Positions 35,430-63,575 are shown, counted from the first letter of the stretch. The stretch is DNA of 64,000 bases from IMGVR_UViG_3300030108_006260:176444-240443, one strand, 5' to 3'. Notes: generated by a model not told the origin, from the sequence alone. Numbers and translations are program-made.

Positions 35430-36248
35430 ATGAGAGATAACATTAACCACCGGATCCTTGCTCGTTTGAGCAATGCAGTAGAGGACCGGAATCTTCCTCC
35501 CCGGTCGGACATGTATCTTGCCGATGTTCAACCCATTGACGCAACACAGTGTAAGATCCTCGTAGGATATGACAGCCATGTAGCAGGAGAGCCTAGGCTT
35601 TCTCAGATTGAAAGGTTCGTAGAGTCTCGCTGGAACAACGCTGTTGTTGCACAGGCTACCACGGCCCGCAATCATGACGGAGCAGAAGCTGTATCTATCC
35701 TAGTGACAGCCAATGTTCCTACTCGTAATGTTGCTGATGCTACAGTCATGCGTAGGATCACCGCAGGAACCTACATGGATAACCAGACAGGTCATGTCTG
35801 GGTTGTCGCAGACAACGGAACCAATAAATATCTCATGAGGCGCCCTGAAAAGCCCATCGAGGAGATTGTTGGAGCCCCAGAGCGTGTTTCTAGGAAGCAA
35901 GCCCGCTTTGAAGATCTACGCACAGCCTCGGCTATGGTAGGTGAGGGTGACACTGTTCGTTTCTGGGACGGCTCTATGCCCATGGTAGGCAAGGTAACAT
36001 CCTCAGCAGCAGACTCCTTGTCTGTATCTGCAAACGGCAGGTCCTACAAGATCAGCCCCGAGGCTGTTTTCAATGTGGTCGAGCGCTCGGAGTCCAGGCT
36101 CAGCGGCGAACAGTCAACTCTAGAGGACTACTACGCCCGTGCTTTTGGAAGTGAAGACTTTGCTCGTAAGTTTACACGCAAGCTAAACAGGCAAGAAGAT
36201 CCACTTTCTTCTGACACCGGCTGGTCCGGTGGTGGAAGTGAGGACTGA
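35430..36248 (+). CDS. Hypothetical head-module protein
   Basis: 272-aa ORF with AGGAGA RBS; C-terminal SH3-like segment. Confidence 0.6.
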   Translation: MRDNINHRILARLSNAVEDRNLPPRSDMYLADVQPIDATQCKILVGYDSHVAGEPRLSQIERFVESRWNNAVVAQATTARNHDGAEAVSILVTANVPTRNVADATVMRRITAGTYMDNQTGHVWVVADNGTNKYLMRRPEKPIEEIVGAPERVSRKQARFEDLRTASAMVGEGDTVRFWDGSMPMVGKVTSSAADSLSVSANGRSYKISPEAVFNVVERSESRLSGEQSTLEDYYARAFGSEDFARKFTRKLNRQEDPLSSDTGWSGGGSED

Positions 36249-36270
36249 TTTATAGGCGTTATGCCTTTTC

Positions 36271-36531
36271 ATGTCAAAACGACTTAAAAGACTTAGAGTT
36301 CTATCTAAAAAGTTAGATTCTCTTCTGGATAGGGGTGAAAACCTCAGGTTTCCTCGTGATCCAGATAAAACAGTAGATGAGAATGTGCCCGTAAGCCCTC
36401 ATGGGTTTCCGGGCATTCTCACTGATACCATGGGAGGCCCAGGTAGTGCCCGGCATAGGGAACACCAAGCTCCTGGGCCTCGTGGTATAGCCTCCTCGGA
36501 AGAAGAGGAAGAAGAGGAAAAGGATGACTAG
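36271..36531 (+). CDS. Hypothetical protein
   Basis: 86-aa ORF with KRLKRLRVLS leader. Confidence 0.5.
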   Translation: MSKRLKRLRVLSKKLDSLLDRGENLRFPRDPDKTVDENVPVSPHGFPGILTDTMGGPGSARHREHQAPGPRGIASSEEEEEEEKDD

Positions 36532-37129
36532 GGAAAATCCCTTTAAAAATCTATCATCTGACCAGAGAGAACTTATAGAGAAAGCCTACGAGTCGGGACA
36601 GTCTCCTGAGGAGATAGGTATAAAGTTCGAGCTGGACTTTGACGATGTACGGTTTTATTGTGAAAACTTCATCACACCTCCTAAATCTAGGTATGAGAGA
36701 CTGCAAGAGATTGTATCAGATCTAGAAAGCACGACAGAGCAGTGTAGGCATCGTATTGACAGCGGGAGCCAAGACTCTGCAATGATGATACAGTCATATC
36801 AGAGGCTTATGTCCGAGTACCGTGTTGCACTTGCGGAGTTGGATGAAGTTAAGACCCCCACTGATGTAGTTGAGGACATCGTAAAGAAAGTCCTGAACCC
36901 ATTTGTAATAGGAATAGCAAAGGTGTCCACAGAGGAGACTAAGAAGCTACAAGAGGAGCTGATTAAGCTAAACGTACCTAGTAGAGATGCTAAGGGTATG
37001 TCTGAAGAGATTTTTCGTAGGCTAATGGCCAACGTAAAAACAAACTTGGTAGATGCTGAACGTGCATTGAATGGGTACTATGGAATAAAGTCGAAGAAGA
37101 ATGACGACATCATGGGAGGCATACGATGA
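36524..37129 (+). CDS. Putative terminase small subunit
   Basis: N-terminal HTH (GQSPEEIGIKFEL) then coiled coil; upstream of the large terminase. Confidence 0.45.
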   Translation: MTRENPFKNLSSDQRELIEKAYESGQSPEEIGIKFELDFDDVRFYCENFITPPKSRYERLQEIVSDLESTTEQCRHRIDSGSQDSAMMIQSYQRLMSEYRVALAELDEVKTPTDVVEDIVKKVLNPFVIGIAKVSTEETKKLQEELIKLNVPSRDAKGMSEEIFRRLMANVKTNLVDAERALNGYYGIKSKKNDDIMGGIR

Positions 37130-37428
37130 ATCCTCAGATAAAAGCTAGACTTGCCCATGTTGCTTCTAATGTCCGGTTACTAGAAAAATTTTCTAAAATT
37201 TTACTAGCAGAGATCAGTACGTCTGATGAAGTACTGAGAGATCTTGGAGTAGTCGAGGACACCGAGAACGAAGAAGATGAGTGCGACATGTCCCTGGATC
37301 CTATGGATTGTGGCATGGACGATGGATCTGTCCCTGCGGGCCCCAGGAACGAGCCAAACAAATCCATTTACCAGGTGTCCACAGGACATGGACAGTCTAC
37401 AGTAGATATGTTCACTTCTGTTGCCTGA
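37126..37428 (+). CDS. Hypothetical protein
   Basis: 100-aa ORF with IKARLAHVAS leader. Confidence 0.55.
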   Translation: MNPQIKARLAHVASNVRLLEKFSKILLAEISTSDEVLRDLGVVEDTENEEDECDMSLDPMDCGMDDGSVPAGPRNEPNKSIYQVSTGHGQSTVDMFTSVA

Positions 37429-37455: not shown

Positions 37456-40400
37456 ATGCTTGACTTTGAATCGTCATCTTTTGACGAAGAGAACAGCCAT
37501 CTATTAGACTTAGATAGGCTTATCGAACAGGTAATAGAATCTGGACTAGATCCTAGTGTATTCGACCACGCCATTGACATTGAATACGCTAAAAACGTAA
37601 TAGACTTTGCACTTAATCCTGATTTCTTGGACACTGTTCTATGGGCTAAACAGGCCGAGCAAGCAGTAAGGCTATTTTCTGAGTATTGTCCCGAGTGTAC
37701 CGACATGGACTTCTTCAATGATGTCCCTGTTGATGCTGTTATGGGAACATTCAAGTCTAAGGTAGTATTACTTGAGAACGGTGTCTGCCCAGTATGTTCT
37801 AAAAACAAGAAGGAGCTGTTCAAAGAGCTTCCTTTTGAGCTGGTTTCTTGTTTGGGTCAGCGCGCAGGAAAGACTGCTCTTACCGGAGGAGTTCTTGCCC
37901 CTTATTACGTACACAAATTTCTACAAATACCTAACCCTGCGCGGCACTATGGTCTAATGAAAGGATCTTTCTTTCAGATGACCTTTGTTGCCGTTACAGC
38001 AGGACAGGCTTATGAGTCTGTGTGGATGGCGTTTAAGGGTGCTATCGCAAACAGCCCGTGGTTCCAGAAGTACATAGCCAGACTTCATGCAATAGAAAAA
38101 GAAAGAAACCTCGAAAAGGGAGACCTCGTAAAGGTCCTTGACACTGGCATCTTGTTTAAAAACAAGATGCTTTCTTGCAGCTTTGCCGCAGCAGATATGA
38201 AATCTCTTCGTGGTAGAACACGTGTATTCTGTGTAAGTGGAGATACTAGTATTGTAACAAATAGTGGTATCGTTCACGCGAGAGATATATCTTCATTAGA
38301 AGATCCCTTGTTCCTTACAAAAGATGGCGGGTACAAAAAAGTCACACGTTCTTTTGAAAGAGAAACTGATACATTACGCATAGTAAGTTCTTGTGGGTAT
38401 GAACTAACCGGGAGCACGGAACACCCTGTCCTAATCGCAAACCCTGACGCTACGTTACAGTACAAACCGCTCGGAGAATTGTCTGAGGGGGACGTTCTAG
38501 TTATATCGAGAGACCCCCAGCAGATGAGACCTGACGCAGACCCAGGACCACTTCCTGCTCCGCCTAAGAAAGGTCCACTGGGTCACAACAACAGGAAGTA
38601 CATACCTACTGATAAGATGACAGCAGACCTTGCGTACCTCCTTGGAATCCTGGCAGCAGAGGGGTACCTTACTAAAAAAGTGGTTAGGTGGCACACTTCC
38701 GATAAAGATATATTAGACAAGTCCTTAGCTTCTTTTGAGTCTGTTTTTGGTACCCTTCCTAAAGTTATACCGCATGATTCTCTTGAGGAAAACTGGTCCC
38801 CAGGTTGGTATATTGAGGCACAGAGCCCTATTGTATACAACTTCCTGAAGGGTATAGGGCTAAGTGGAAAGTCCCACGAGAAAACTGTTCCTTGGTCGAT
38901 ATTGAGGAGTAACAGTTCTTGTGTGAGGAGCTTCCTTGCTGGTTACCTAGACGGAGATGGCAACGTTGAGTTCGATTCTGAAGGAAAAGCCAAGGCTGTT
39001 ACGGTTCATAGTAAGAGCGAGGACCTTCTTCGAGAAGTTCAGCTACTTCTTCTTTCTCTAGGTATCGTATCCCATAGGTCAAAATACACTAGGGAGATAA
39101 AAGGCAAAGAAGGAACATACTACAAACTACAGATGTTCGGTAAAAATGTAGGACTTTTTAGTCAGAAGGTCGAGTTGATACCAAGAAAAAGAGGAAGTTC
39201 CACTCCATCTGAGTACATAGACACTGACCGTGTTTACCTAGACCTAGGTGAATTACACACAATGTCAGAAGAAACCAACTTTGCACTATACTACAAGAGA
39301 AACTATCAAAACTCTGTCTATGCTTCGACTATAAAAAAGAAATTTTCTGTTCTTCAGGATAGTCACCCTGATGTGGCAGGTAGATTGTCTGAGTTCTTTG
39401 AGCAGAACCTATTTTTCGATCCAGTAAAGTCGATAGAAGAAACAGGCATTCAGAAAGTGTACGACTGGACCGTAGAGGATGAGCATAATTTCATAGGAAA
39501 TGGAATAATACAGCATAACTGCGCAATTGACGAATTGGGCTGGTTCAACTCATCTGATATGAAAAGGGCAAATGCAGATGAAACCTACGCTGCTTTATCA
39601 AACTCACTGAGAACTATACGCTCTGCTTCAGACCGTCTGTGGGACCAGGGAAACTATAATACTCTCCCAGGATACATGGCCAACTTTTCCTCACCCAGCT
39701 CTCAGTATGATAAGATTATGAGGCTCCTAAAAGAAGGAGAGCGAGATAAGAGAAAGGTTTGCTTTCACATGGCGTCTTGGGAGGCGTCACCGCTAATTAC
39801 TAGAAAGAGTCTTTCTTCCGAAGAACTGAACGATCCAGTAAAGTTTTGGAGAGACTTTGGTGCCGTTCCTCCTCTTGCCAACAACCCGTTCATAGAATCG
39901 GAGAGTGCTATAAAGTCCACACAATCGGCTACTAAGCCTGTGATAAACTGGAGACCTAAATACGTACAGGACAAGGTCAATCCTGATATGAGGTACATTG
40001 CTGCGGAGCTGGTGGGTAACGTAAAAGACAGGCTAACGCCTCGTCTGATAGCAGTGGATGGCGGAGAGAGGCAGAACTCCTTCGCTATTGGAATATTCCG
40101 AATGGAACCAAAGCCCGATGGAGGATTCCAGATCATACAGGATGCCATTATCGAAGCAAAACCAGAGAAGATAGAAAGAACAAACGAGGTCATACCCGTT
40201 CACTTTCCTACCATGTTCGACCTTGTACTTAAGCTATCTGACAAATATAAGGGTCTGAACGTTTTAGCGGTTGTGTACGATAGGTGGCAGTCTACTGGAG
40301 AGGTTCAACGCCTCCGTGAGATGAAGGTTAAGGCAGAGAGATACTCTCCAAAAGAGTCAGATTTCAAGATACTTCGTAACATGGTATACAGCGGTGACTT

Positions 40401-40752
40401 CAAGACACCAAAATGGGAACACAAAGAACTTTCAGACCTGGACATCAGCAACGTAGCTGAGGTCCGTAAAGCACCCTATACACACCAAGCTATACAGTTT
40501 GCTACAGTAAGATCTGTCGGTAAGAAAATAGTCAAGCCTGAGGTTGGAGAAGATGACTTGTTCCGTGTATGTGTTCTTGGAGCACATTACCTCATAGACA
40601 ATCAAAAGGACTTTATCTCTAAGAACTTCGGTGCAAGTAAAGATAGGGGATCTATAGGTACTGTAGCTATGAAGACGAGCAACAGTACATATTTTGGGGC
40701 GCGGTCAAAGACTAACATTGGGTCGGTTAGAGGTAAGTACAAGAAGTTTTAG
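37456..40752 (+). CDS. terL: Terminase large subunit (intein-containing)
   Basis: Walker A GQRAGKT, LRGRT, Walker B AIDE after the intein, SSP, RNase H-like IAVDGG...YDRWQS...EDDL. Confidence 0.9.
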   Translation: MLDFESSSFDEENSHLLDLDRLIEQVIESGLDPSVFDHAIDIEYAKNVIDFALNPDFLDTVLWAKQAEQAVRLFSEYCPECTDMDFFNDVPVDAVMGTFKSKVVLLENGVCPVCSKNKKELFKELPFELVSCLGQRAGKTALTGGVLAPYYVHKFLQIPNPARHYGLMKGSFFQMTFVAVTAGQAYESVWMAFKGAIANSPWFQKYIARLHAIEKERNLEKGDLVKVLDTGILFKNKMLSCSFAAADMKSLRGRTRVFCVSGDTSIVTNSGIVHARDISSLEDPLFLTKDGGYKKVTRSFERETDTLRIVSSCGYELTGSTEHPVLIANPDATLQYKPLGELSEGDVLVISRDPQQMRPDADPGPLPAPPKKGPLGHNNRKYIPTDKMTADLAYLLGILAAEGYLTKKVVRWHTSDKDILDKSLASFESVFGTLPKVIPHDSLEENWSPGWYIEAQSPIVYNFLKGIGLSGKSHEKTVPWSILRSNSSCVRSFLAGYLDGDGNVEFDSEGKAKAVTVHSKSEDLLREVQLLLLSLGIVSHRSKYTREIKGKEGTYYKLQMFGKNVGLFSQKVELIPRKRGSSTPSEYIDTDRVYLDLGELHTMSEETNFALYYKRNYQNSVYASTIKKKFSVLQDSHPDVAGRLSEFFEQNLFFDPVKSIEETGIQKVYDWTVEDEHNFIGNGIIQHNCAIDELGWFNSSDMKRANADETYAALSNSLRTIRSASDRLWDQGNYNTLPGYMANFSSPSSQYDKIMRLLKEGERDKRKVCFHMASWEASPLITRKSLSSEELNDPVKFWRDFGAVPPLANNPFIESESAIKSTQSATKPVINWRPKYVQDKVNPDMRYIAAELVGNVKDRLTPRLIAVDGGERQNSFAIGIFRMEPKPDGGFQIIQDAIIEAKPEKIERTNEVIPVHFPTMFDLVLKLSDKYKGLNVLAVVYDRWQSTGEVQRLREMKVKAERYSPKESDFKILRNMVYSGDFKTPKWEHKELSDLDISNVAEVRKAPYTHQAIQFATVRSVGKKIVKPEVGEDDLFRVCVLGAHYLIDNQKDFISKNFGASKDRGSIGTVAMKTSNSTYFGARSKTNIGSVRGKYKKF
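38230..39519 (+). mobile_element. Intein with LAGLIDADG homing endonuclease in terL (430 aa)
   Basis: CVSGDT start, block B TEHPVL, LLGILAAEG and FLAGYLDGDG, ends IIQHN followed by Cys. Confidence 0.93.
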
Positions 40753-41183: not shown

Positions 41184-41552
41184 ATGCCTTCCTATAAAAT
41201 AGAAGCTGCTAGCTTAGAGCTGGTGGCTGGAGATCTACTTAAAGAGGGTCTTGTAGATGAGGCAGCTGAACTTCTTTCTCTTGCTTCTTCGTCAATGACG
41301 GAGAAGGATCAAGAGTTACAAATGAATGTGTTTGAAAGGGTCCTTTCTGACACCCCTGTTGATGTTTCTACTTTGTCTTTAGATCCTAAGACTAAGGTGA
41401 TGAAGTTTTCAGTAACAGGAATGGACGTATTATCTCTTCCTAAGTTTTTGGATAAATTAATGCGCCGTTTGTCTAACTACGGTACCACCGATTATACCCT
41501 GGAAGGTGTAGACCGTGGTAGGTCTCTTGTGGCAAGGATCAAGATTGGGTAG
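41184..41552 (+). CDS. Hypothetical protein (putative capsid-targeting leader)
   Basis: LELVAGDLLKEGLVDEAAELLSLA leader. Confidence 0.55.
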   Translation: MPSYKIEAASLELVAGDLLKEGLVDEAAELLSLASSSMTEKDQELQMNVFERVLSDTPVDVSTLSLDPKTKVMKFSVTGMDVLSLPKFLDKLMRRLSNYGTTDYTLEGVDRGRSLVARIKIG

Positions 41553-41606: not shown

Positions 41607-44600
41607 ATGTCTAGCATTAAACTAAATTACAACAAAATGAAGATCGCATCCCTACGCAGGGCAGCTGTAGGGGGTAGTAGTTTTGGATTTGGTAATGGTG
41701 GAGGATCCGGTGGTAGTGGCGGGTTCTCAGGTCCCTTCAGTTATGGTGGAGGAGGCGGAGGAGGAAGGAACTCCCACAATAGGTACAACCCTGTATACGA
41801 TGACCTTTCCGAGGGCACTATTATCGAGCAGTTCATGCCGGTGGACCCTCGTCGCCTGCATAGGATTTGGAGAAGAATTTATCTTCAGGACCCTGTTGCC
41901 GGTCCTGCTGTAGAGCTGTACAAAGACCTTCCTTGGTCTGACTTTGAACTCCTTGGTATTGATGACCCTGCTGTAGCGCGTTTATACACTGACGCAATGA
42001 ACGCAATCAATATCAATGACCTTTTGCCTGAACTCTCAGCGGAGTTTCTGACAATGGGAAAGGTTATTGGTCATCTTACAATGAATGAATCCAAAGGTCA
42101 TTGGGATCGATGTATTATACATGATCCTGATTGGATTCGAGTAACTCCTATTCCTATTCCTGGATTCCAGCCTAAGCTAGACATTATTGCTACTCCTGAA
42201 ATGAGAGCATGGTCCCACTCTAAAGATCCTAGAGACCTGCAAGCTCAAGAAGAAGTCGAAGAGCTGGTGGAAATGATTCGTAGGGGGTTGGACATTCCTC
42301 TTCCTACAGAGCAGACGTTCTACATTCCTAGGAGAACCTCCCCCTATGATGTGATAGGTGCATCTGCCTATACACGAATCATCATGTTCGTTGCTTATGA
42401 GAAGGCCCTCGTAAATGCAACAATCGCGGCTTCTAGAAGAAGAGCATCTCGTATACGCCACATCACGGCTGGAATCGACGACGTTTGGGAGCCAAGTCCG
42501 GACGAGATTAACGACCTATCCAACTTGTTCATGCAAGCGGACGAGGACCCTGTTGGAGCTATTGTTGTGACCAGAACGGGTGTCAATGTGAACGAAGTGG
42601 GAGGTAGCTCTCCACAAGACATTCTTAAGATCTCGGATGAGTGGCAGTTCCTTCTACAAGGTAAACTTAATGCTCTTGGTGTTAGCGAGGCGTTTCTTAC
42701 GGGTGAGGCTTGCCTTGTCGGTGACAGTCTAGTTCCGACCTCTAAAGGTCTTGTTGAAATTGGTAGTTTCCGCAGCAGAGAAGACGGACAGTGGCAGGAC
42801 CTATCTGAAGAAGTAAGTTCTAGGTACGGTAGTGCCCCCACGTCTAAATGGCTATACAACGGATACAGAGAAACCTTCAAGTTAGAGACAAAGTCAGGGC
42901 ACACACTTCAGAGTACTCCTAATCATCCTGTTCTTGTATTTGATCAAGAATCGGGAGTAGCTGATTGGAAGAGGACAGACGAATTGTCTCTGGGAGATTT
43001 GCTCTGCGTTTCAACCGCTAAGATGGTCAGGACGGAGCCTCTCCCCCTCAATTTGAGTCTACCCTCTGTTCGAAGTGCTTCCTGCAAAGTTCCTTCTACA
43101 CCCTCTCACATGAATGCAGACCTAGCCTACTTGCTGGGGTGTGTTGTTGCTGAGGGATCTTCCACTAAACATATGGTTAGTGTGAGCAACTCTTCTCAAG
43201 ACATACTGTTTAGGTATGAAAGATGCTGGTCATCCGTGTTTGGAATGACAGGGTCCCAATACCCAGTTAGTAAGGCTGGCGATACAGGTGTTATTAACGG
43301 AGTATCTTTTACCGTAAATAACGACTGTTACGACTACAGGGTACATAGCATCATTGCTAGCCAGTGGCTAGAGGACTTGGGCGCAGCTAACGTAAAGTCT
43401 AAGGATAAGAGAATTCCTTGGTCTGTGCTTCAAGCGGATGAGGAATCCCAACTGGCGTTTCTTGGCGCTTATTTGGATTGCGATGGATCTATACACCACA
43501 ACAAGGGTCAGATATCATTCCACTCAAGCAGTAAGAAGCTTCTACGTGACCTACAGGCCTTACTAAACTCACATGGTTACGTTTGTAGGCGTACTAAAAA
43601 GTCTGTAGAGCTTACCCGGAGGGACAGTAAGGACCTTTGGGAAAGTCTGAAAAAATACGTGGTAACTAAGTCTTACCCATCTGATGAGTCCCTCGCTACC
43701 AAATCCAGAAACAGGTTTGGCGTACCTAACAACTTCGTCAAGAAAATAATTTCGGAAAGAAAAATCAAGCACAATCGTCATGGATCTTACTTCCTTAACG
43801 ACGAAGGCAAAGAGATTCTCGTTCCTAGTGTAAGAAGCCCATTGAACGACGAGAAAAAGTTCCTTTACGACAGGTATTCCTCTGGTAACTACGATGAATG
43901 GCTTGATAACCTCAAGAAAATAAGCCCAAGTACCCACAAAAAACTTATAGGTCTCCTAGACCTTAGGTATGACTTTACTCCCATTGTATCGCTTTCTACG
44001 GGAGGTAAGCAGCATGTATATGATATTTCTATGGAAGAAGGACACGAGCCTGCTTTTGTAGCAAACGCGCTTGTCGTCCACAACACTTACAATACCATGG
44101 AACAGCTCATGTCTGTCTTCTTGGAGAAGATCAAGGCGTTCCGTAACTTCTTTGTCAACCAGCTTTTGCTTGAGAAAATCATTAAGCCACTAGCTGTTAA
44201 GCACCACTTCGTCCACCGACGACAAGCGGACCTGGACCACAATGTACGCACTGGTGGAAGAAAAGATCCTGAGTACATCATACCCTCTATTGTATGGGAA
44301 AAAAGTCTCCGTCCTGTAGCTGACCGTGACTATCTAGAAATCCTAGATATGATGGAAAGCAAGGGGATTCCTATCACTCTTCGCACGTGGGCAAGTGCTG
44401 CTGGCTTCGACGTCGAGGCCGAGACTGAGCAGTTTGTAGACGACATACGTGTTCGTCGAAAGATGGCAGACCAAAAGAAAAAGATCGTAGAGCAGGCTCC
44501 AGAGGCAGCGGGTGGATCTGGTGGTGGCGATGGACTCGGTGGCGACATGGGAGGACTAGGCGGTATAGGTGATGACCTAGGCGGCCTCGGTGGAGATCTT

Positions 44601-46065: not shown

Positions 46066-46139
46066 TATTTTAATCATTATTACCTATATGTTTGATACTT
46101 TAGCGCTTTTGATGTAGGATTTTTAGTCTACAAAAGTAG

Positions 46140-46168
46140 TTGACAGCTTATCATAGCGTGTTAAGTAT
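46140..46168 (+). promoter_or_regulatory. Sigma70-like promoter for endonuclease 1
   Basis: TTGACA, 16 bp spacer, weak -10 TAAGTA, 7 bp before ATG 46175. Confidence 0.4.
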
Positions 46169-46174
46169 CAAGCT

Positions 46175-52593: not shown

Positions 52594-52649
52594 GCCGCAA
52601 TCGCGGCTTTTTGGGAATGGCCTCGCTTTATGCGGGGCTTTTCTCTTTT
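52594..52649 (+). terminator. Two tandem rho-independent terminators
   Basis: GCCGC-aatc-GCGGC-TTTTT and GCCTCGC-tttat-GCGGGGC-TTTTCTCTTTT. Confidence 0.75.
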
Positions 52650-55957: not shown

Positions 55958-55980
55958 TAAGTAGACGCTCTTTTGAGTTG

Positions 55981-56013
55981 AAAAGGCCCAGGTCTCTTGA
56001 CTTGGGCCTTTTT
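55981..56013 (+). terminator. Rho-independent terminator after MCP
   Basis: AAAAGGCCCAGGTC-tctt-GACTTGGGCCTTTTT. Confidence 0.85.
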
Positions 56014-56025
56014 CAATTGTATAGT
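55997..56025 (+). promoter_or_regulatory. Sigma70-like promoter for endonuclease 3, overlapping the MCP terminator
   Basis: TTGACT-17-TATAGT, 9 bp before ATG 56035. Confidence 0.6.
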
Positions 56026-56034
56026 GACCTGTCG

Positions 56035-57549
56035 ATGACCAAGGTGTCTCAGGAGTATGTTCTTCGTAGACTCTCGGAAGGAGCATCGTTAACCCTCATT
56101 GCTCGTGAACTCAAAGTCAGCCCTTCTACCCTAAAAAGGAAGGTAGACTTACCCAAGCAGGGTACCTTAGAATGGTATCGTATCAAGTTTCCGGACGCTG
56201 GGGTCGAGTCAGTGGAAGAAGGGAAGCTGATCCTTTCTGAAGGACGGAGAGTGTCACCGGGTGAGCTACGTCAGGAGAGTTCTTTCATATCTAATAAGGA
56301 CCGTCTACTTCAGCGGTGGGCCCGTGGGGACAGTATTAGTACCATCGCTAAAGAGCTAAAGACTTCAAGGACTAGACTAGCGCCCCGTCTAGGAATACCT
56401 CCTATAGGTACAGTCGACTATTACTCTTTTCTGCTTTCACTTCTTACTTCCTCAATTAAGGTGAAGGAACTGATCCCTGGAGATGTGGTTCAACTCGAAT
56501 GCAGGGACGTGAAGAGGGGTGTACAATTCACAGCGCCTGCCTGGTGGGTTGTTTCTAGGTTACGTAAAGATCCTGACTACACTTTCTTTCCAAGCCAAGA
56601 CGAAAGAAAGAGCAAGATGATTGCAAACGGTACGATTTCTACGATCAGCGGGATGACACTGCCTGCCTACGCTGAACAGGTCGGGGCCTCCTACGCTACT
56701 GTACACAAGAGGCTGTCTTTAGTAGGGGAAGAGAACGCTATTCGTTCTTTTGACGGGTACTCCACCAGGGAAAGCACCCTAGAGTCTATGGTGTCCTCTT
56801 GGGTGGAGGACGTAGGCTGTTCTTTCGTGCGTAATAACAAGCTAGAGGGAACATCGTACCTCCCTGACCTCGTTGTGCATTCTAGGCGGCTGGTTATTGA
56901 ATGTGATGGTCTCTACTGGCACTCAGAAGCTCAAAAGGAAAAGAACTATCATCGAGACAAGAAGCTAACATACCAGAACCTTGGGTATAAATCAATCTTT
57001 CTTAGGGAAGATGAATTGCTCAAGTCGCCTGACATATGTCGAAGTATTATACTTAATCACCTAGGGTCTAACAGAAGGGTGTACGCTAGAAAGACCACTG
57101 TCTCCTCAGGGGGAAGAGATTTTATCTCGCAAAATCACTTGATGGGAAAGGGGAAGGGTACAACATGGTCCCTCATTTCAGGAGATGACATCGTTGCTGC
57201 TATGCAAGTTCGGTGGGTATCCAGAGATAAAGGTATACTTGACATCTCTAGGTTCTGTTCTTCTCCTGGTGTTACTGTGGTAGGGGGATTTTCTAAGCTG
57301 ATAAAGCATGTCACAGAAGAAATGAAGCCTAATTCTATACAGAATTTCATAGACCTGCGCTACGGGTCGGGCAGCTACCTGCGTGGGATGGGGTGGAAGT
57401 CTCACAGAACTTACCTATCATTCAGGTGGACAGACTGTAGAGGTAACACGTTCCATAGAATGAGGTACCCAGGTAAAACTGGATATGAACATGGTCTTTT
57501 GAAAATATGGGACTGTGGACAAGCCAAGTGGACTTTAGACCTGTCCTAG
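56035..57549 (+). CDS. Free-standing Hef-like homing endonuclease 3 (HTH + Vsr-like + GNAT/Mom-like)
   Basis: Two HTHs (SLTLIARELKVSPSTL; SISTIAKELKTS), YLPDLVV...IECDGLYWHS, RVYARKT...WDCGQAKW; likely start ATG 56035. Confidence 0.75.
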   Translation: MTKVSQEYVLRRLSEGASLTLIARELKVSPSTLKRKVDLPKQGTLEWYRIKFPDAGVESVEEGKLILSEGRRVSPGELRQESSFISNKDRLLQRWARGDSISTIAKELKTSRTRLAPRLGIPPIGTVDYYSFLLSLLTSSIKVKELIPGDVVQLECRDVKRGVQFTAPAWWVVSRLRKDPDYTFFPSQDERKSKMIANGTISTISGMTLPAYAEQVGASYATVHKRLSLVGEENAIRSFDGYSTRESTLESMVSSWVEDVGCSFVRNNKLEGTSYLPDLVVHSRRLVIECDGLYWHSEAQKEKNYHRDKKLTYQNLGYKSIFLREDELLKSPDICRSIILNHLGSNRRVYARKTTVSSGGRDFISQNHLMGKGKGTTWSLISGDDIVAAMQVRWVSRDKGILDISRFCSSPGVTVVGGFSKLIKHVTEEMKPNSIQNFIDLRYGSGSYLRGMGWKSHRTYLSFRWTDCRGNTFHRMRYPGKTGYEHGLLKIWDCGQAKWTLDLS

Positions 57550-57710: not shown

Positions 57711-57926
57711 ATGAGAGATATCAAAGAAAGACTTCTACGCATAGGTCTTGAGATCAGGTCCTCCTTGGATGCCCGGTCTGTAGCGGAGGAACTATTTTCC
57801 GCTCATGCACTAATGCAAGAATCTCTCGATAAGAGAGACCCTACTTCCTTTGCCTCTGCATTTAGAGACGCAAAGAAGTCACTTTCTAGGTTAAGAAGAG
57901 TCCTTAGGCTGAACAGCAGACCCTGA
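57711..57926 (+). CDS. Hypothetical protein (putative internal head protein)
   Basis: MRDIKERLLRIG leader. Confidence 0.55.
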   Translation: MRDIKERLLRIGLEIRSSLDARSVAEELFSAHALMQESLDKRDPTSFASAFRDAKKSLSRLRRVLRLNSRP

Positions 57927-57969
57927 TCCTCTAGGCTGTCTATTATCTCGTTACGGATTAAAAATTTAA

Positions 57970-58326
57970 ATGGAAAAAAGTATTGCAGAAAGACTGCGCC
58001 AGGTGTCCAAAAACATCGACAAACTGGCCCAAGTAAAAGAGATAGTGGAATCCAGCATAGGTCTTAGCCCCCAGGAGCAGATATGTGCCGCAGCATCTAT
58101 TGGCGCAGAGTATATTGCTGCTATGACAGGAAACCAGGATGAATCTGGGCTGATATATCGTGCTTACGAAGAAATACTCGCGTCACTATCACAGTCCCCC
58201 GCTATAGAAGAGATGCTACAGTGGAGCCGTGTTCCCCTTACTAAAGAAGCTTCATACAAAGAAGACCTTGATGATGCCTGGGTAGGGTTTAGGCTGGCTC
58301 TCCTTTCTGCTGGGAGGTCAAAATGA
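57970..58326 (+). CDS. Hypothetical protein (putative internal head protein)
   Basis: MEKSIAERLRQVS leader. Confidence 0.55.
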   Translation: MEKSIAERLRQVSKNIDKLAQVKEIVESSIGLSPQEQICAAASIGAEYIAAMTGNQDESGLIYRAYEEILASLSQSPAIEEMLQWSRVPLTKEASYKEDLDDAWVGFRLALLSAGRSK

Positions 58327-59042
58327 GTTTTTATAGCAGGATACTGGCTGTAGCAGGAATTAAATCAGCTGCTGCTAAGAAAAAGAAGACTACCAAGAAG
58401 TCGCCTAAGAAGACGCCTAAGAAGTCGCCTAAGAAGACTACCAAGAAAACAACTCCTTCTGTGGAGGATGCGTTTTACGCTCTACGCACCTGCTTGCACA
58501 GTGACCTTGGAAAAGGGACTGGATCGAGAGAGATGCGCCTCCTAGATCGTATAAAGTACGCTTTAGAGGTAGAGGGGTATAAGCTAACCACCTCTACTAA
58601 TGAACCAGGGTCAATGCCCAAGACACCTAGTAGACTAAGTTCTTCCACTCACTTTGTAGCTAGCGGTGGTATGTGTACTCTTATAAGAGGATCTGCTCCT
58701 GAGGGATTAGACATCAATGCTGTAGTATCTCTTTCCGACTTGTTTCGTAGTAAGCAGTGCTACAAGTGCACCATAGACCCATCTGATAACACTAACTCCA
58801 GGTCTCGTGGTGCAAACATGGCGCTTCCTAAGCCAGTTACCTGGCATAAGCTGCAAAAGTATGGGCTCTCTGTTGAGAATGTACTTGATGATGAGGGTAA
58901 AGTGCTACTAAAGAAGTACACTATCGAAGGAGTGAGTAGTTACACTGTAGATAGTCATACATTTTTTATGTCAAATAAAGAAAAGTTCCGCCGATGGATG
59001 GACGGACTTGATAGGTCAATCTCTAACTACCTAGAAAAGTAA
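58323..59042 (+). CDS. Protein with histone H1-like (S/T)PKK repeats
   Basis: KKKKTTKKSPKKTPKKSPKKTTKKTTP after leader YSRILAVAGIKSAA. Confidence 0.55.
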   Translation: MSFYSRILAVAGIKSAAAKKKKTTKKSPKKTPKKSPKKTTKKTTPSVEDAFYALRTCLHSDLGKGTGSREMRLLDRIKYALEVEGYKLTTSTNEPGSMPKTPSRLSSSTHFVASGGMCTLIRGSAPEGLDINAVVSLSDLFRSKQCYKCTIDPSDNTNSRSRGANMALPKPVTWHKLQKYGLSVENVLDDEGKVLLKKYTIEGVSSYTVDSHTFFMSNKEKFRRWMDGLDRSISNYLEK

Positions 59043-60436
59043 TGCTATCCTTCGTCAAAAAAGCAACTGTGCAGGATGCAGAGTCCGCAGCAAGGATTTA
59101 TTCCCAGTACCTTAATAGGGACGTAGACCTAAGCGTAGACTTTAATTCGATTCCTGTTAGTCTTTTGGATGCGCAGGCTGACGACGGAGTTTTGTACCTT
59201 AAGTTTTCTTGGCAAGCGGAAGATATAGGTAATGATTATAGAATTATTAGGAGTAAACTGGGTAAGGAAGTACGAGTACGCATAAACTCTGAAGAAATGG
59301 TAGGAGTCTTAGGTACAACAACGGAGATTCCTCCAGGTGCTGACATGGACACCTATAAAAATTCTCCATTTGTTCTGGCTATGACTTTTCCTTCTTCTAA
59401 GTTTGCTTCTTTTAAGGGCTCCATCATAGGAATCGACGTTCCCTCTAACATCCGGGACCTTCTTCCCATAGCAGATGACTTAGAGTACGATCCTCACATT
59501 ACAGTTGCCTTCTTCCCTAACCTAAGTACAGAAGATATACCTCTGGTACTCAGGGCAGCTAAAGAAGCCGCTAAGAAAGTTGGGTCCTTTTCTGTACGTG
59601 TTACCCAAAGCAAGACGTTTCCTACTCCTGACGAAGAAGGTAACTATCCTCATGTAGCTCTTATCGAAAGTGATGAGCTTAGATTTATGCATGAGGAGAT
59701 AGTACGCGTGCTAGAGCACTATTCTCCAGGATTAGTAAGTACTGATTTTGTTGGTAAGAACTACAATCCTCACATTACTCTTAAGTATTCTAAGAATCCA
59801 TCGTCTTACTCTCCCATTAAAGAGCTGAAGTGGAGCGTAGACTCTATGTTCCTGTCTTACAGAGGAGGGGACGAGTTTTTCCCTATACCCCTTAGTGGTG
59901 AAAAGTGTGCCTCAGGTGGGGGATCCATACAAGTAGGTGATGTGACGATTCCTGTCATGTCAGTAAATGACAACGACAACATAATATCTATAAATTTAGA
60001 GAGAGGCAAACACTCTGACTTAGTATCTACATGTGAGGGGCAACAAGTTACGTTGTCTACCCCCTCTTACAATAAAAAGATACAGATTTTAGAGGTTTCC
60101 GAAGAAGGTCCCGATCGCTTCTCTTTATCTTATCGTCCCTTAGTTACTTATATGTCAAAAAAGTCACGGTACCTACTCATAAAGGTGTCTAACCTCCTTG
60201 AGTTGAGAGGGTTTACCGCTTTATCTAAGCGTGTGGCTTCACTTTTAGACTTTTCTCCTGAGGAATCTGAATCAGAGGGGACTGAAGAGGAAGAACCAGA
60301 AGACGTAGACGCCCTAGGACCGGGCTTTCCCGGAACTGACCCCCGCATCGTAACTTATGTTAAGGCTCCACAGACTACTCAAACTATTGACGAGCCAAAG
60401 TTCCCTATGACCTTACCCCTGCACGAGAGAATTTAG
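59042..60436 (+). CDS. Multidomain protein with central 2H phosphoesterase (2'-5' RNA ligase / Acb1-like) domain
   Basis: Two HxT motifs: DPHITVAF and NPHITLKY. Confidence 0.8.
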   Translation: MLSFVKKATVQDAESAARIYSQYLNRDVDLSVDFNSIPVSLLDAQADDGVLYLKFSWQAEDIGNDYRIIRSKLGKEVRVRINSEEMVGVLGTTTEIPPGADMDTYKNSPFVLAMTFPSSKFASFKGSIIGIDVPSNIRDLLPIADDLEYDPHITVAFFPNLSTEDIPLVLRAAKEAAKKVGSFSVRVTQSKTFPTPDEEGNYPHVALIESDELRFMHEEIVRVLEHYSPGLVSTDFVGKNYNPHITLKYSKNPSSYSPIKELKWSVDSMFLSYRGGDEFFPIPLSGEKCASGGGSIQVGDVTIPVMSVNDNDNIISINLERGKHSDLVSTCEGQQVTLSTPSYNKKIQILEVSEEGPDRFSLSYRPLVTYMSKKSRYLLIKVSNLLELRGFTALSKRVASLLDFSPEESESEGTEEEEPEDVDALGPGFPGTDPRIVTYVKAPQTTQTIDEPKFPMTLPLHERI

Positions 60437-60439
60437 CAA

Positions 60440-61279
60440 ATGGATAAAGAAATCAAGAAGATGTACACGGCATCCGCCCGTCTACAGCGTGTCGTGTACA
60501 ACGACTTTATGGAAAAGACAGCGAATCCCGCAATTATGGGTATAGCACGTGCTTTGCTTCCAGCACTCAAGTCACTTGGTCCTCAGGTCCTGAAGCTTGT
60601 TGCTAAAGTACCTCCTGCTGCGTGGGCTAACATCATTCCTACTATAGTACGTGGCATAGCTCCTAAGGAAAACCCTGCTGGGGTAACCGCTTCTTCGTCC
60701 AGCAAGGAGGCATTTGGTCCTGCCGCTGGTCTTGCCATGCGTATGCTTGCACCTGCTGCACTGGACATGGTTATGGGTGACGATGACGAGCCAGAGGATA
60801 TGGATGCATCTTCTGAAAATGAAGAGGACATGGACGAGGATAAAGAAGGTATTGCTCCTCTTGCTGGTCTAGCCCTCAGTACGCTCGCTCCCATGGCTCT
60901 AGACTCTCTTATGGGAGACGATGACGAAGCCACTACAGCTTCTAAGAACGATGAAAACGACGAAGATGAGGATGAGGACAAGGAGGGCTTAGGGCCCTTG
61001 GCTGGACTGGCACTCAGTACTCTTGCTCCTATGGCTATTGACTCCATCATGGGAGACGACGATGAGGCTACAACAGCTTCCGCACACTGTGAGGTAATCG
61101 AAACTGTCCTCAAGAAGCACAAGGTTGCTCATGCAGAAATTGTGGCCAAGTCTCTTTACCTTGCGGCCCTTGAGACCAGAAATTCCCATAAAAAGAAGCC
61201 ACGTAAGGCTGTAGCAGAGGCAGTCAAGCTCGTGCAACGGATGCAGGACGAGCTTGAGGCACTCAGGGCTTACCTATAA
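60440..61279 (+). CDS. Repeat protein: amphipathic/hydrophobic peptides separated by acidic spacers
   Basis: Three PxAGLA...LAP.A.D..MGDDDE units plus one cationic amphipathic segment. Confidence 0.65.
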   Translation: MDKEIKKMYTASARLQRVVYNDFMEKTANPAIMGIARALLPALKSLGPQVLKLVAKVPPAAWANIIPTIVRGIAPKENPAGVTASSSSKEAFGPAAGLAMRMLAPAALDMVMGDDDEPEDMDASSENEEDMDEDKEGIAPLAGLALSTLAPMALDSLMGDDDEATTASKNDENDEDEDEDKEGLGPLAGLALSTLAPMAIDSIMGDDDEATTASAHCEVIETVLKKHKVAHAEIVAKSLYLAALETRNSHKKKPRKAVAEAVKLVQRMQDELEALRAYL

Positions 61280-62100
61280 TGGATCCGCTTTCTCTAGAAC
61301 AGCAGAAACAGGCAATTTCGTCTGCTTCTAAGACTCTTTTATGGGAAATTCTAGAGGAAGAAGGCGCTTGGCTTAAGGTTCTGGGGGTTCTTCCTAGGGA
61401 ATACTTCGACTCTTTTCTCTCTGCTCTTAGGAGAGCAGGAGTTACAGGAGAGAATACGAACAAAGTTCGAGCACATGCATCTATGTTCGTAAAGAACAAG
61501 GTAAGCCTTCCTCACTTGCAGGCTGCCCTTGTGCAGGCATGGAATCCTTCCGACCTTAAAGACTCTGCTTCTTGGTTGAAAGAGAAGGGATTTTTGTCTA
61601 CTCCTCTGTCTCCTCTTACTGTAGATGACAAAAAGGAGATAGTAAAGTCCGCAAGTTCTGTTCCCTCTGCTACAAAAGAGAGAATGCTCCGTCAGGCAGG
61701 AGGTAAAAAACCAAGATCAAACCACCCTCCTGACGGTGCTTCTTTAGAGGGCCGTAAACTGTGGAACAGAGTCCTGAGGAATCCTGGTAGAAGAAAAATC
61801 ATTTTTGGCCCCAAGTCTCTGAGTGACCAGTGGTCTCTCGCTACTAAGTTTTGGCTAAAAGAATGTGCAGATCAGGGTGTTGCCCCCTATAAATCGGACG
61901 CGGAATCTAGCTCTAAGTCCATGCACGCTCAGAATGTCATAAGTAGAGCTATGCAAGAGCTACATGGGGGTCTATGTTACGATGGGTACTCTATGAGCCG
62001 TCCTGCGGCTCGCGCCTATAAGAAGCTATGGCGCCAGCTAGAACGAGATGGTGTTTCGTTAGGAAGTTGGACCTCTATAAAGCCTAAGAGAAAAATCTAA
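61279..62100 (+). CDS. Hypothetical protein
   Basis: 273-aa ORF with 1-bp overlaps to neighbours. Confidence 0.6.
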   Translation: MDPLSLEQQKQAISSASKTLLWEILEEEGAWLKVLGVLPREYFDSFLSALRRAGVTGENTNKVRAHASMFVKNKVSLPHLQAALVQAWNPSDLKDSASWLKEKGFLSTPLSPLTVDDKKEIVKSASSVPSATKERMLRQAGGKKPRSNHPPDGASLEGRKLWNRVLRNPGRRKIIFGPKSLSDQWSLATKFWLKECADQGVAPYKSDAESSSKSMHAQNVISRAMQELHGGLCYDGYSMSRPAARAYKKLWRQLERDGVSLGSWTSIKPKRKI

Positions 62101-63575
62101 TGAGTATTTACGACGAGACAGAAAGTTACTCTATACACCTACAGAAGGTGGCGCACATGGTATTGTCGTCACCTGACATTAAGGTTGCTACACTTTCCAA
62201 GTTAGTGGGTGAAGCAGGTCTATTTGATAGGGAGCTAGCTTCCATACTTACGGTCCTTTACTCTCACAATAACTTAAGTGGAAGAGGCATGCCTGAGGCT
62301 AGCAAGCCCATTGTCCTTTTAAAGAGGATTGCAGAAGACCTACAGGACCGTGGATTCTATTTTCCATCGTTTTCTCGTAGGCTCAAGCACATCGAATCCG
62401 CTACAAATGGGTCTTTCGAGAGAAAAGAAGGGTCCCAGTACGGAGGCGGTGAGTCTCAAGCGCTAGACAGGCCCCTACGGTCTCTTAGAGAAAAGCTCTA
62501 CGAGGTTAGGCTCCATGATGCTGGGCACGCCAAAGATGAGGGTGGTAAGGACATAACAAAACGTACCGGAGAAGAGACTCTATCCATGGTGGAGAAGCTC
62601 ATAGGGGCTATTAAGACCTTAGAGACAGAGGGGTCTCCTTATGGAGTGAGTGATAGTTCGGACAGAGCTAACTCCCGTCGAAATGAATTCTTGGACAAGA
62701 GGTTCGATGAGTTCGGACAGAAGCTGAACTTCTCGGTAGGGTCTACCGCAGAGGGACAGAAGATAGAAATGTATCACCTGCACCCTGTCCACACCGAAGA
62801 TTTTGGAGAACGTACCTACGCAATATCCGAAGACAACTATGCCCTACTTGTTTCGGTTATGAGGAAAGCAGTTCCTGACTGGTCACCTTCCGAATCCTAC
62901 GCGTATGTGGACAATATTATTCCTCCTATCTATCCCTCTAAAGATAGGGGCAGATCTATCGAGTCACCCGACAGATCTACACAGAAGCAAAGAGAGCAAG
63001 AAGCGCAAAAAGAGAGGGACTTACTAACGTCTATCTCTCAGAAGGGTGAATACGATCAGTCTGTAGTCCGTACTATAAGGCTTCCCTTCGCTCCTGACCA
63101 GATAGACGACAACTTCCCCAGCCTGGAGCTTGACTCCGACACTTATATCGGACAAAACGTATCTAAGGTTGTTGTCGAAAGTATAAACCGGATGAGATTT
63201 TCGGGGTTCGTAGACTTTGATCAAGACTATCGAATGATGATAATGTGGGCGAACGCACCAAGTGACGATCACAAAGACGTCATGGGAAAAACATATAGAG
63301 ATTTACTAGAAAAAGTATTGAAGGCGTACTCTTCTAAGTTTGGTGACCTACTCAAGGTAAAGCCCGAGGTTAGGAAGATAAAAAGGGGTGCAGCCCTTTA
63401 CTTCCCCAAGCCCATAAGCCTACATGTTTTGGTAAAATCGTTCACTCCACTTCAAAACCTCCTAAACCAGACGAACGCAAGTATTGAGAACGCGGAAATA
63501 GCTCGTGGCCTTGAGAGGTCTTTCAACAGGGAGATCAACGATGATGAGCTTCCTGGACACATGGAGAATTCCTGA
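62100..63575 (+). CDS. Hypothetical protein (putative internal head protein)
   Basis: 491-aa ORF; HLQKVAH / IKVAT leader. Confidence 0.6.
   Translation: MSIYDETESYSIHLQKVAHMVLSSPDIKVATLSKLVGEAGLFDRELASILTVLYSHNNLSGRGMPEASKPIVLLKRIAEDLQDRGFYFPSFSRRLKHIESATNGSFERKEGSQYGGGESQALDRPLRSLREKLYEVRLHDAGHAKDEGGKDITKRTGEETLSMVEKLIGAIKTLETEGSPYGVSDSSDRANSRRNEFLDKRFDEFGQKLNFSVGSTAEGQKIEMYHLHPVHTEDFGERTYAISEDNYALLVSVMRKAVPDWSPSESYAYVDNIIPPIYPSKDRGRSIESPDRSTQKQREQEAQKERDLLTSISQKGEYDQSVVRTIRLPFAPDQIDDNFPSLELDSDTYIGQNVSKVVVESINRMRFSGFVDFDQDYRMMIMWANAPSDDHKDVMGKTYRDLLEKVLKAYSSKFGDLLKVKPEVRKIKRGAALYFPKPISLHVLVKSFTPLQNLLNQTNASIENAEIARGLERSFNREINDDELPGHMENS

Follow-up and report, generated by a model that had tools for sequence, protein, structure and literature searches.

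In phage T4, ten leader residues suffice for the loading of a protein; positions 4 and 7 target it, positions 8 and 10 (P3 and P1) direct cutting, and the packaged ADP-ribosyltransferase (ART) Alt is cut at both ends (PMC9026906, PMC3012670). The T4 prohead protease, gp21, also bears its motif close to its own N-terminus (PMC9026906). Here we describe a short amphipathic leader carried by otherwise unrelated head-module proteins of an uncultured marine jumbo phage. The phage is represented by IMG/VR contig UViG_3300030108_006260 (240,443 bp; 100% identical to the locus designated L001), and we analyzed its final 64 kb (64,000 nucleotides [nt], contig positions 176444-240443; hereafter the window). 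We consider it moderately probable that this leader, together with a [K/R]-x-A-S motif that recurs in the same module, forms a T4-type code for addressing and processing proteins during head assembly, in a different spelling.

The leader resembles the T4 capsid-targeting sequence (CTS; carriers IPI, IPII, IPIII and Alt; protease gp21) in several ways. Both are N-terminal leaders of ~10 residues on unrelated, fast-evolving proteins, and both end in a motif, the protease's P3/P1 in T4 and a putative one here, that recurs in scaffold and capsid proteins. An ADP-ribosyltransferase is among the carriers of both, and both proteases bear an N-terminal motif of their own, the one described here having a predicted gp21-like fold. 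The two systems differ in spelling, R-L-x-[K/R]-[V/L]-[A/S] here as opposed to MKTYQEFIAE in T4, and in the putative cleavage motif, with a basic P3 and a small P1 replacing L/I-x-Glu. In addition, the protease encoded here is not a Peptidase_S77 protein by sequence, some copies of the motif are C-terminal or nearly so, the N-termini of portal and scaffold bear a full leader-like helix, and the system is known from computation only.

Other phages provide further comparisons. In phiKZ, 201phi2-1 and SPN3US (gp175/gp245; [S/A/G]-x-Glu), which are also jumbo phages, many head and ejection proteins, along with the portal and the major capsid protein (MCP), are trimmed of N-terminal propeptides by a diverged gp21-like protease, and cleavage motifs are repeated within the propeptides (PMC10052503, PMC5694885). 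Those propeptides are mostly long (111-254 residues), lack a common leader consensus and are cut after Glu, whereas the leaders described here are 11-13 residues long, have a clear consensus and show no general [S/A/G]-x-E. In phage P1, an N-terminal signal of ~30 residues suffices to load DarB, a large anti-restriction enzyme, and also a reporter into the capsid, and the protease is HK97-like by HHpred; there is no consensus among the Dar proteins (PMC9024508), while here one consensus occurs in at least ten families. Encapsulins use short conserved N- or C-terminal peptides on unrelated cargo enzymes encoded beside an HK97-fold shell gene (10.1101/2021.03.18.436031). They have no portal, terminase, scaffold or protease, they retain the peptide, and their consensus is unrelated. 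As terminase, portal, protease, scaffold, connector and a spike-like protein are all present here, we rejected an encapsulin system.

Results

An initial annotation of the window had listed amphipathic motifs in unrelated head-cluster proteins, and each motif string that it named was present in the open reading frame (ORF) to which it was assigned. (ORFs are designated below by their first nucleotide.) Among the 62 proteins of the window (~19,000 amino acids [aa]), the strict pattern R-[LI]-x-x-[VIL]-[SAG] occurred 14 times. Seven of the 14 matches were at residues 6-13 of head ORFs (36271, 37126, 48390, 49747, 57711, 57970 and 58323), and an eighth terminal match was 20 residues from the C-terminus of 49747. 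The pattern was absent from the first 25 residues of the 36 other window proteins (Fisher p=0.0013), and 5000 composition-preserving shuffles gave a mean of 0.25 and a maximum of 3, compared to the 7 observed. The starts of 48390 and 49747 were chosen by the analyst; when both are left out, 5 of 26 head ORFs and 0 of 36 others carry the pattern.

When position-specific profiles were built by leaving out one family at a time, with 54 control N-termini for comparison, 5 of the 8 families took rank 2-4. The highest-scoring "control" was in each run probably the untrained 48390 ORF itself, because its TRIRLLVLAQ is the sole untrained N-terminal match of comparable score in the full scan; this identity was read from the full-scan scores. 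The motif was kept in orthologues only 30-55% identical, from related IMG/VR contigs. In these relatives, the profile also matched sequences on which it had not been trained, namely the counterparts of 57711, the scaffold N-terminus (RAARLKRIAS), the C-termini of the 49747 counterparts and the C-terminus of a 78-129-aa family, and matches were mostly ≤25 residues from the N-terminus or ≤15 from the C-terminus. In the replication-gene region of a related contig (L021), a very acidic 176-aa protein (5718-6248, minus strand) contains AKARIVRLAG 16 residues before its end, and a 104-aa protein (7207-7521, minus strand) contains FAKDLLRVSS 9 residues before its end. These two may be additional carriers of a C-terminal tag, or the profile may have matched them falsely.

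The consensus of the leader is phi-x-x-R-L-x-[K/R]-[V/L/I]-[A/S/G], with a hydrophobic residue (phi) often three positions before the Arg. Over 51 instances, which were selected and whose counts describe the motif rather than test it, R was present in 41, L in 40, [R/K] in 37, [V/L/I] in 50 and [A/S/G] in 50. The hydrophobic residues at -3, +1 and +4 (plus +8 and +11 in the 57970 family) lie on one face of a helix. Carriers span 71 to 491 aa, recognizable enzymes among them, and all-against-all BLAST revealed no similarity beyond the motif, which ruled out paralogy. A cause at the DNA level, such as a promoter, repeat or RNA element at gene starts, was ruled out by the varied codons and the lack of a coinciding direct repeat. 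No Rfam families or tRNAs were found in the window. Thus, the shared amphipathic motif on unrelated head proteins that the initial annotation described was recovered, with seven strict N-terminal and about four variant carriers, and it is kept in relatives.

We examined the second element, the [K/R]-x-A site, in the virion-module proteins (5525 aa after removal of inteins and endonucleases). The form [K/R]-x-A-[S/A/G] occurred 32 times, compared to 7-20 times for each of eleven re-ordered control patterns. For [K/R]-x-A-S, 17 sites were observed and 4.7±2.2 expected (z 5.7; 3.6-fold), while the other 13,237 aa contained 5 with 9.4 expected. Neither [K/R]-x-S-[SAG] nor [K/R]-x-G-[SAG] was in excess, and in an unbiased reduced-alphabet scan "+.AS" came second, behind Gly runs. 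Per-protein shuffles, the re-ordered controls and the reverse pattern ruled out a composition artefact. Enrichment in head over other genes, which had been suggested as a check, was therefore found for both leader and site. The excess of [K/R]-x-A-S recurred in the head loci of L002-L008 (z 2.5-5.3), including the more distant, 47%-identical relative L008 (9 observed, 2.8 expected). It was absent, as was the leader, from the head modules of PaBG (L011) and Erwinia Alexandravirus (L019), whose MCP and protease belong to the same families (33-39% identity); the PaBG paper contains no cleavage data.

As the initial annotation had reported, [K/R]-x-A-[S/A/G] recurs in portal, scaffold, MCP and protease, and it is conserved near their N-termini. 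The N-terminal sequence of the portal (41607-45320, plus strand; phrog_16240, with an intein detected by Pfam) is NKMKIAS-LRR, with KIAS at residues 12-15 (nt 41640-41651), followed by a Gly-rich linker. The form [KR]-[IT]-A-S-L-R-[KR] is present in 4 of 4 close relatives with an N-terminus; L008 has HTAG. The linker occupies positions 41700-41780, and the C-terminal part of the portal gene contains an imperfect GG(D/L)(L/M)GG array with a period of 21-30 nt (44529-44694). The scaffold-like protein (50915-51844, plus strand), which is encoded between protease and MCP and belongs to phrog_20988 (homologue of PaBG gp082), has RAARQKRIAS at its N-terminus, with RIAS at residues 16-19 (nt 50960-50971). 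Other scaffold sites are KTAA (residue 31), REAA (113), RMAS (197), RAAS (266) and RTAG (284), and those at residues 16-19, 31-34 and 284-287 are conserved. Scaffold-orthologue N-termini, although untrained, scored 10-15 bits on the cargo profile.

The MCP (54836-55957, plus strand) has two sites, G-I-R-T-A-G at residues 30-35 (RTAG 32-35, nt 54929-54940) and T-R-Q-A-S at residues 76-80 (RQAS 77-80, nt 55064-55075), both conserved in relatives. Because the MCP aligns with the 280-aa capsid protein 6WKK from residue ~81-105 onward, it has an N-terminal extension of ~80 residues with R-Q-A-S at its end. In the protease, L-[KR]-x-A-S near the N-terminus is kept in 6 of 7 relatives.

The ends of the leaders (K-V-S, R-V-G, K-V-A, R-I-G, H-V-A, R-L-A and similar) have the form [K/R]-x-[A/S/G]. 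Because of this, the two observations of the initial annotation, a leader and a recurrent site, can be described as one code, in which [K/R]-x-A is the putative cleavage motif. On sequence grounds, we rejected [S/A/G]-x-E or L/I-x-E as the real motif, since only the MCP site is followed by S-x-E. No conserved x-x-E was found past the leaders or past the portal or scaffold sites, and none was among the enriched patterns.

The gene for the candidate protease (45327-46065, plus strand) follows that of the portal and contains a gap of 10 N (45373-45382) in codon ~16; at its literal length, the gap puts the ATG at 45327 and the downstream ORF in different frames. Orthologues are uninterrupted (M-x-K-x-G...RVFEG-x-[ST]-C...GNLKVAS) and predict a true gap of 3 nt, and contigs of four public marine runs span the gap with exactly 7 of the 10 N left out. 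As the gap is 3 nt, the protease gene is continuous and in frame, with 243 codons, and LKVAS is encoded at nt 45418-45432. The protein matches phrog_18299 (head maturation protease; E 1.6e-55). Searches with the window protein and seven relatives gave no Pfam match even at E≤10, so that membership of Peptidase_S77 (PF03420) was not detected, and there was no sequence match in PDB. The family has 1,645 representatives at E≤0.001, among them proteins of cluster C mycobacteriophages and many jumbo phages, and inteins are frequent. We modeled the structure with AlphaFold2: an alignment of 8 sequences gave a predicted local distance difference test score (pLDDT) of 51, which is unusable, and one of 97 sequences gave 93. 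The only PDB fold matches with appreciable probability were three chains of T4 gp21, 5JBL (probability 0.72-0.92, template modeling [TM] score 0.37-0.52, E 0.04-0.1). H96, S149 and E204 are invariant. These data are suggestive, but not strong, evidence that the product is a diverged gp21-like serine protease.

The carriers begin with three small or medium ORFs on the plus strand at the start of the head module. The product of 35430 (35430-36248; 272 aa) has a variant leader, NHRILARLSN, at residues 6-15 (nt 35445-35474), with K-I-[IL]-D-R-L-A in orthologues (L013 and L015), and an internal RTAS at residue 164, where [KR]-x-A-[AS] is present in 3 of 3 orthologues; it has no Pfam or PHROG match. 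ORF 36271 (36271-36531; 86 aa) starts with RLKRLRVLSK at residues 4-13 (nt 36280-36309; strict motif at residue 7; KLRKLA in the orthologue), followed by an acidic, Gly/Pro-rich tail with GFPGILTD. ORF 37126 (37126-37428; 100 aa) has IKARLAHVAS at residues 5-14 (nt 37138-37167), with LQRRLIRVAR in L002 and VRKRLFRSS in L013.

Two carriers lie between protease and scaffold. ORF 48390 (48390-49193, plus strand), within a homing-endonuclease-associated insertion, encodes a 267-aa putative ADP-ribosyltransferase with TRIRLLVLAQ at residues 5-14 (nt 48402-48431); its GTG start agrees with homologues P0151-P0153. ORF 49747 (49747-50820, plus strand) encodes a 357-aa helical protein with LRKRLLFIAE near the N-terminus (nt 49774-49803) and LSERLRKVSK near the C-terminus (nt 50749-50778). 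The C-terminal copy, counted from the last residue of the 10-mer, is 14 residues from the end, as it is in all positional counterparts (L002, L003, L005, L006 and L007). This protein, tagged at both ends, is likely a core component. A 27-nt A/T-rich element, GTAAAAAAACTATAAGTTTAGTCACTT, occurs twice just upstream of the 49747 gene (49611-49666) and once near its 3′ end (50765-50791), and may be regulatory.

The remaining strict carriers are encoded on the plus strand downstream of the MCP. In 57711 (57711-57926; 71 aa), IKERLLRIGL is at residues 4-13 (nt 57720-57749), and its positional counterparts in L002, L003 and L007, which are unrelated by BLAST, start with M-x3-LKTRILRVAE, SRIRLLKVAN and HKIRLLRLAN. 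ORF 57970 (57970-58326; 118 aa) has IAERLRQVSK at residues 5-14 (nt 57982-58011; LQKRFLKVSD, IQERLIRVGR and LEKRFLKVAH in orthologues). In 58323 (58323-59042; 239 aa), the leader FYSRILAVAG at residues 3-12 (nt 58329-58358) leads straight into a Lys-rich [ST]PKK tail, with a conserved domain beyond it. Its five orthologues have R-[LI]-[LM]-x-[VL]-[AS]-[SAG] and then K-rich tails, with a sharp drop in conservation past the motif. From what is established about SPKK motifs, the tail suggests that this protein is DNA-binding. The families of 35430, 36271, 37126, 57711, 57970 and 62100 were not recognizable in Pfam and PHROG searches.

ORF 59042 (59042-60436, plus strand; 464 aa) has its motif pair, YLLIKVSN...SKRVAS, near the C-terminus (residues ~375-400, nt 60164-60241), followed by an acidic linker and a conserved GPGFPGTD tail, elements that are conserved in six orthologues. 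The protein is a 2H phosphoesterase: it matches 2_5_RNA_ligase2 (41.7 bits, cut-off 27) and LigT_PEase (37.3 bits, cut-off 23.3) in Pfam and has the two H-x-T motifs, PHITV and PHITL. Because its score against Acb1 (19.8 bits) is under the 27-bit cut-off, a role against cyclic-oligonucleotide-based antiphage signaling (CBASS) is not established. Residues 388-431 align with residues 5-48 of 36271. More broadly, 36271 resembles the C-terminal ~90 residues of 59042 (60200-60436), both having a leader-like helix, an acidic linker and GFPG(x0-2)TD, and the 37126 family has a looser PAGPR / PGTD element. The C-terminal element shared by 36271 and 59042 could represent another short linear motif, or else an adaptor module; we rejected "GFPG..TD" as a second general tag, as it is limited to these two families and the loose 37126 variant.

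The variants in 35430 (HRILARLSNA), 60440 (SARLQRVV) and 62100 (IHLQKVAH) were missed by the leave-out profile, and each is conserved in its own family. ORF 60440 (60440-61279, plus strand; 279 aa), which contains three acidic 46-aa repeats, has the weak variant ASARLQRVV at residues 11-19 (nt 60470-60496); orthologues have KRLRQLV or KMRRMV, with V replacing the small residue, and in L003 and L007 the element is internal, behind an extra N-terminal domain. ORF 62100 (62100-63575, plus strand; 491 aa) has YSIHLQKVAH at residues 10-19 (nt 62127-62156), and its six orthologues have phi-x-phi-Q-[KR]-[VL]-A at the same place. In 41184 (41184-41552, plus strand; 122 aa), the annotated LELVAGDLLKEG is not conserved; the conserved element of the family is at residues ~27-36, a weak motif-like AAELLSLASS that reads ARAIMRLARG or ARELYRIAKS in orthologues. 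Most instances in the initial annotation therefore hold, and those at 35430, 41184, 60440 and 62100 are weak or in the wrong register.

The putative ART allowed us to follow one enzyme through several phage lineages. Its core is YHGT...LINGFDA. The match to ART-PolyVal (PF18760; E 0.012, 16.8 bits) is below the 31.2-bit cut-off, and PF18760 is annotated, in precomputed form, on 2 of 77 homologues; the YHG[TS] motif is present in nearly all homologues listed, and neighbors in the ESM atlas include PARP and Arr clusters. The family had no match in 50,697 phage records. Across the 77 homologues, the catalytic core is kept, and the leaders (0-44 residues) fall into at least four discrete classes. 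The R-L-x-[KR]-[VLI]-A leader is present on the closest homologues, P0151-P0153, and on P0163, from a relative of the window's clade, whose gene adjoins ribonucleotide reductase, outside the head module.

Contigs identified as T4-like through Pfam have the ART gene just downstream of gp23, and there its leader recurs on 4-7 neighbors. One such contig, L027, encodes Portal_T4, an intein-bearing Peptidase_S77, Gp23 and gp13, and another, L022, encodes Gp23, gp13 and gp15. In L027, the ART leader is common to neighbors, with about six genes starting M-x-K-x-Q-L-K-E-x-I-R-K; in L022, L-[LF]-R-x-Y is common to ART and a second protein. Four consecutive genes of L028 start MK[LI][FY]x-IL[FY]E. In L024, from a further lineage, five consecutive genes, two of which are ART paralogues, start R-V-[AL]-[SG]-R-Y-L or R-L-I-R-L-A-S. 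Compared to the leader of T4 IPII and IPIII (MKTYQEFIAE, read from NC_000866), the leaders of T4-like ART genes are T4-CTS-like, while elsewhere ART carries other types or none. Judged from these sequences, the ART enzyme bears the leader of its phage lineage, in common with unrelated neighbors, as is characteristic of the T4 CTS. Runs of consecutive unrelated genes that share a leader, with a consensus that differs per lineage, are located at 9073-15201 in L024, 9045-13712 in L027, 5593-8689 in L028 and 1656-3226 in L025. The ART family is a recurrent member of such runs, and searches for clustered leaders may offer a general way to recognize capsid cargo.

The head module occupies the plus strand from ~35.4 kb, where it starts with small ORFs, to the end of the contig. 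The large terminase TerL (37456-40752, plus strand; phrog_17415) is split by a LAGLIDADG intein (Intein_splicing and LAGLIDADG_3 in Pfam) that its orthologues lack. Beyond portal and protease is a homing-endonuclease island (46175-49606, plus strand), with a free-standing homing endonuclease at 46175-48412. The 357-aa protein and the scaffold follow, and then a virion structural protein (51877-52587, plus strand), an HNH endonuclease on the opposite strand (52648-54174, minus), the MCP, another endonuclease (56035-57549, plus) and eight ORFs (57711-64000, plus) that end the module. The module thus contains five selfish elements. Two are the LAGLIDADG inteins of TerL and portal; the other three, at 46175-48412, 52648-54174 and 55885-57549, are free-standing homing endonucleases, namely two DUF559/Vsr-like paralogues and the HNH protein. 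Most of these are missing in relatives. In L002, the 49747 counterpart directly follows the protease, and the MCP is ~570 bp after the 51877 counterpart.

The GC content of the window is 45.8%. Its left half contains, on the minus strand, genes for replication and nucleotide metabolism (RecA, topoisomerase, class II ribonucleotide reductase and a sigma factor), and also encodes a 2202-aa spike-like repeat protein (22572-29180, plus strand). This protein and a divergent 124-aa ORF (22007-22381, minus strand) both start M-x-L-x-(V)-x-I-T-N-K-T, and the proteins at 15245 and 20106 of the related contig L021 start MPVLTIQNLTRK and MPTLRVKNLTSK. Here a different N-terminus is shared among tail-like genes. 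Positions 1-3400 contain no ORF >101 aa, no tRNA and no Rfam match.

The MCP is ~33% identical to those of cultured jumbo phages (PaBG, Lu11, BcepSauron and Erwinia phages). Among its counterparts on other IMG/VR contigs (L002-L010), identity is 82-88% for seven, whose contigs reach 424 kb, and 47% for one more. No relatives of the MCP were found in 185,579 GTDB genomes. In L009 and L010 (8754-11169), the MCP gene is in three ORF pieces ~0.5-0.8 kb apart, corresponding to query residues 1-114, 116-199 and 229-373, which suggests introns or other insertions inside the capsid gene. Because DNA nearly identical to positions 45383-46382 is present in the assemblies of at least 12 marine metagenome runs, which belong to several studies (2014-2020) and have it at a word depth of ~8-11x, the source phage is widespread in the sea.

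Discussion

From the motif, its terminal position, conservation and enrichment, the protease fold and the lineage-specific exchange of leaders, we infer docking, a scissile bond, presence in virions and injection by analogy with T4. An amphipathic leader of ~10 residues, with Arg usually at residue 6-8 and occasionally placed at or near the C-terminus, would dock otherwise unrelated proteins on the scaffold or core during prohead assembly. A gp21-like prohead serine protease would then cut at or just after the [K/R]-x-[A/S/G] that ends the leader, with P3 basic and P1 small. The same protease would also cut [K/R]-x-A-S in the scaffold, the portal, the MCP propeptide and its own N-terminus. Peptides of 11-13 residues and scaffold fragments would leave, and the mature proteins, freed inside the shell, would stay with the DNA and exit with it. 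The tagged set consists of the putative ADP-ribosyltransferase, the 2H phosphoesterase, the Lys-rich SPKK protein, the acidic-repeat protein and several small ORFs. It is plausible that these are effectors; the ART and the 2H phosphoesterase are the two with an enzyme assignment.

The initial annotation had proposed a targeting and cleavage code analogous to those of T4 and phiKZ but distinct from them, for loading effectors. The gp21-like fold, the fixed distance from Met1, the coincidence of the leader end with the enriched motif and the exchange of the ART leader all back the core of this idea. The tag is not specific to cargo, however, because scaffold, portal and protease carry it too. 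Indeed, the leader could be a processing signal only, with incorporation into the prohead specified elsewhere in each protein. Such a signal would account for the coincidence of the leader end with the enriched [K/R]-x-A-S and for the presence of a tag on the portal, scaffold, protease and MCP, which need no address. We regard this as unlikely, since conservation over ~10 residues, helical periodicity and a fixed distance from Met1 exceed the needs of P3-P1, and since it is the whole ART leader, not a tripeptide, that is swapped between lineages and common to neighbors, as in the T4 CTS. Also improbable is an uncleaved assembly helix. The mature proteins would retain it as a docking or coiled-coil segment that binds, for example, the scaffold, the portal or the DNA-facing shell, and the [K/R]-x-A-S excess would have some other origin, such as R-x-x-S as a basophilic phosphorylation motif or a structural preference. 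The variable P1′ after the leaders and the predicted strand at LKVAS of the protease would fit such a helix, and the N-terminal signal of P1 DarB works without a known shared cleavage consensus (PMC9024508). Yet the module encodes a gp21-like protease, the position before Ser specifically calls for Ala, with Ser and Gly alternatives not enriched, and the sites cluster in the scaffold and in the N-terminal extensions of MCP and portal, which are classical protease substrates. No kinase was seen in the window.

Short amphipathic N-terminal helices elsewhere direct proteins to a membrane or host factor or act as degrons for a protease, and the gene for the tagged ART homologue P0163 is beside ribonucleotide reductase. 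An address other than the capsid is nevertheless very unlikely, as every strong instance in the window belongs to the head module, the core of the motif is common to scaffold, portal and protease, and T4-like phages place the same ART family behind gp23 with CTS-like leaders. We give the least credence to, and disfavor, chance resemblance or a remnant of common ancestry among small paralogous genes. The motif is short, is rich in common residues and was picked after the data had been seen, but its observed count was never reached by shuffles, leave-out profiles found other families and an untrained one, and nothing is alike outside the motif among carriers of 71-491 aa that include recognizable enzymes.

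Several observations weigh against a T4-type address and processing code. Cultured phages whose protease belongs to this family do not have the code. Conservation fails at about half of the internal [K/R]-x-A-S sites, the position following the leader varies while the structural sites favor Ser, and the 58323 family has no K/R at the putative P3. Three instances in the initial annotation fit only loosely. The profile also matches several small proteins, internally or C-terminally, in the replication-gene region of a relative, so its specificity beyond the window is not established. Moreover, the match to the gp21 fold is weak (E 0.037, TM 0.4-0.5) and the protease falls outside Peptidase_S77. 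Its LKVAS is modeled as a β-strand, a generic hydrophobic-small strand in distant homologues, and may be structural instead.

The herpesvirus protease assemblin, which belongs to the same structural superfamily as gp21, cuts Ala|Ser at [V/L/I]-x-Ala|Ser, with P3 as a determinant. Its Ala|Ser resembles the enriched [K/R]-x-A-S, which we take as a lead only; P3 is aliphatic in assemblin and basic here. A wider form of the T4-type code can be put forward tentatively, as a proposal about as apt to fail as to hold, if not slightly more so: R-L-x-[K/R]-[V/L]-[A/S] at residue ~7 would be an address tag throughout the clade (contigs of 240-424 kb, such as IMG/VR UViG 3300030108_006260, 3300029893_000001, 3300049049_000146 and 3300030332_001481), and a gp21-fold protease would have shifted from cutting after Glu to a basic P3 and an Ala P1, like the Ala|Ser of assemblin. 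If so, the full packaged and injected proteome, here the ART, the 2H phosphoesterase, the histone-like SPKK protein and acidic proteins, would be readable from metagenomes, and leader types could serve more generally to predict capsid cargo in different phage lineages.

Anti-restriction factors, RNA-polymerase modifiers and anti-signaling enzymes are among the proteins that phages inject along with their DNA. Such proteins act ahead of phage gene expression, and identifying them is difficult when virions are not available. A consensus leader tied to a head protease code would let the injected effectors of uncultured giant phages be predicted. It would also give a second natural tag for loading capsids, besides the T4 CTS and P1 DarB, and would document a gp21-like protease changing its specificity together with all its substrates. 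The swappable leader of the ART family shows that such tags are modular and lineage-specific.

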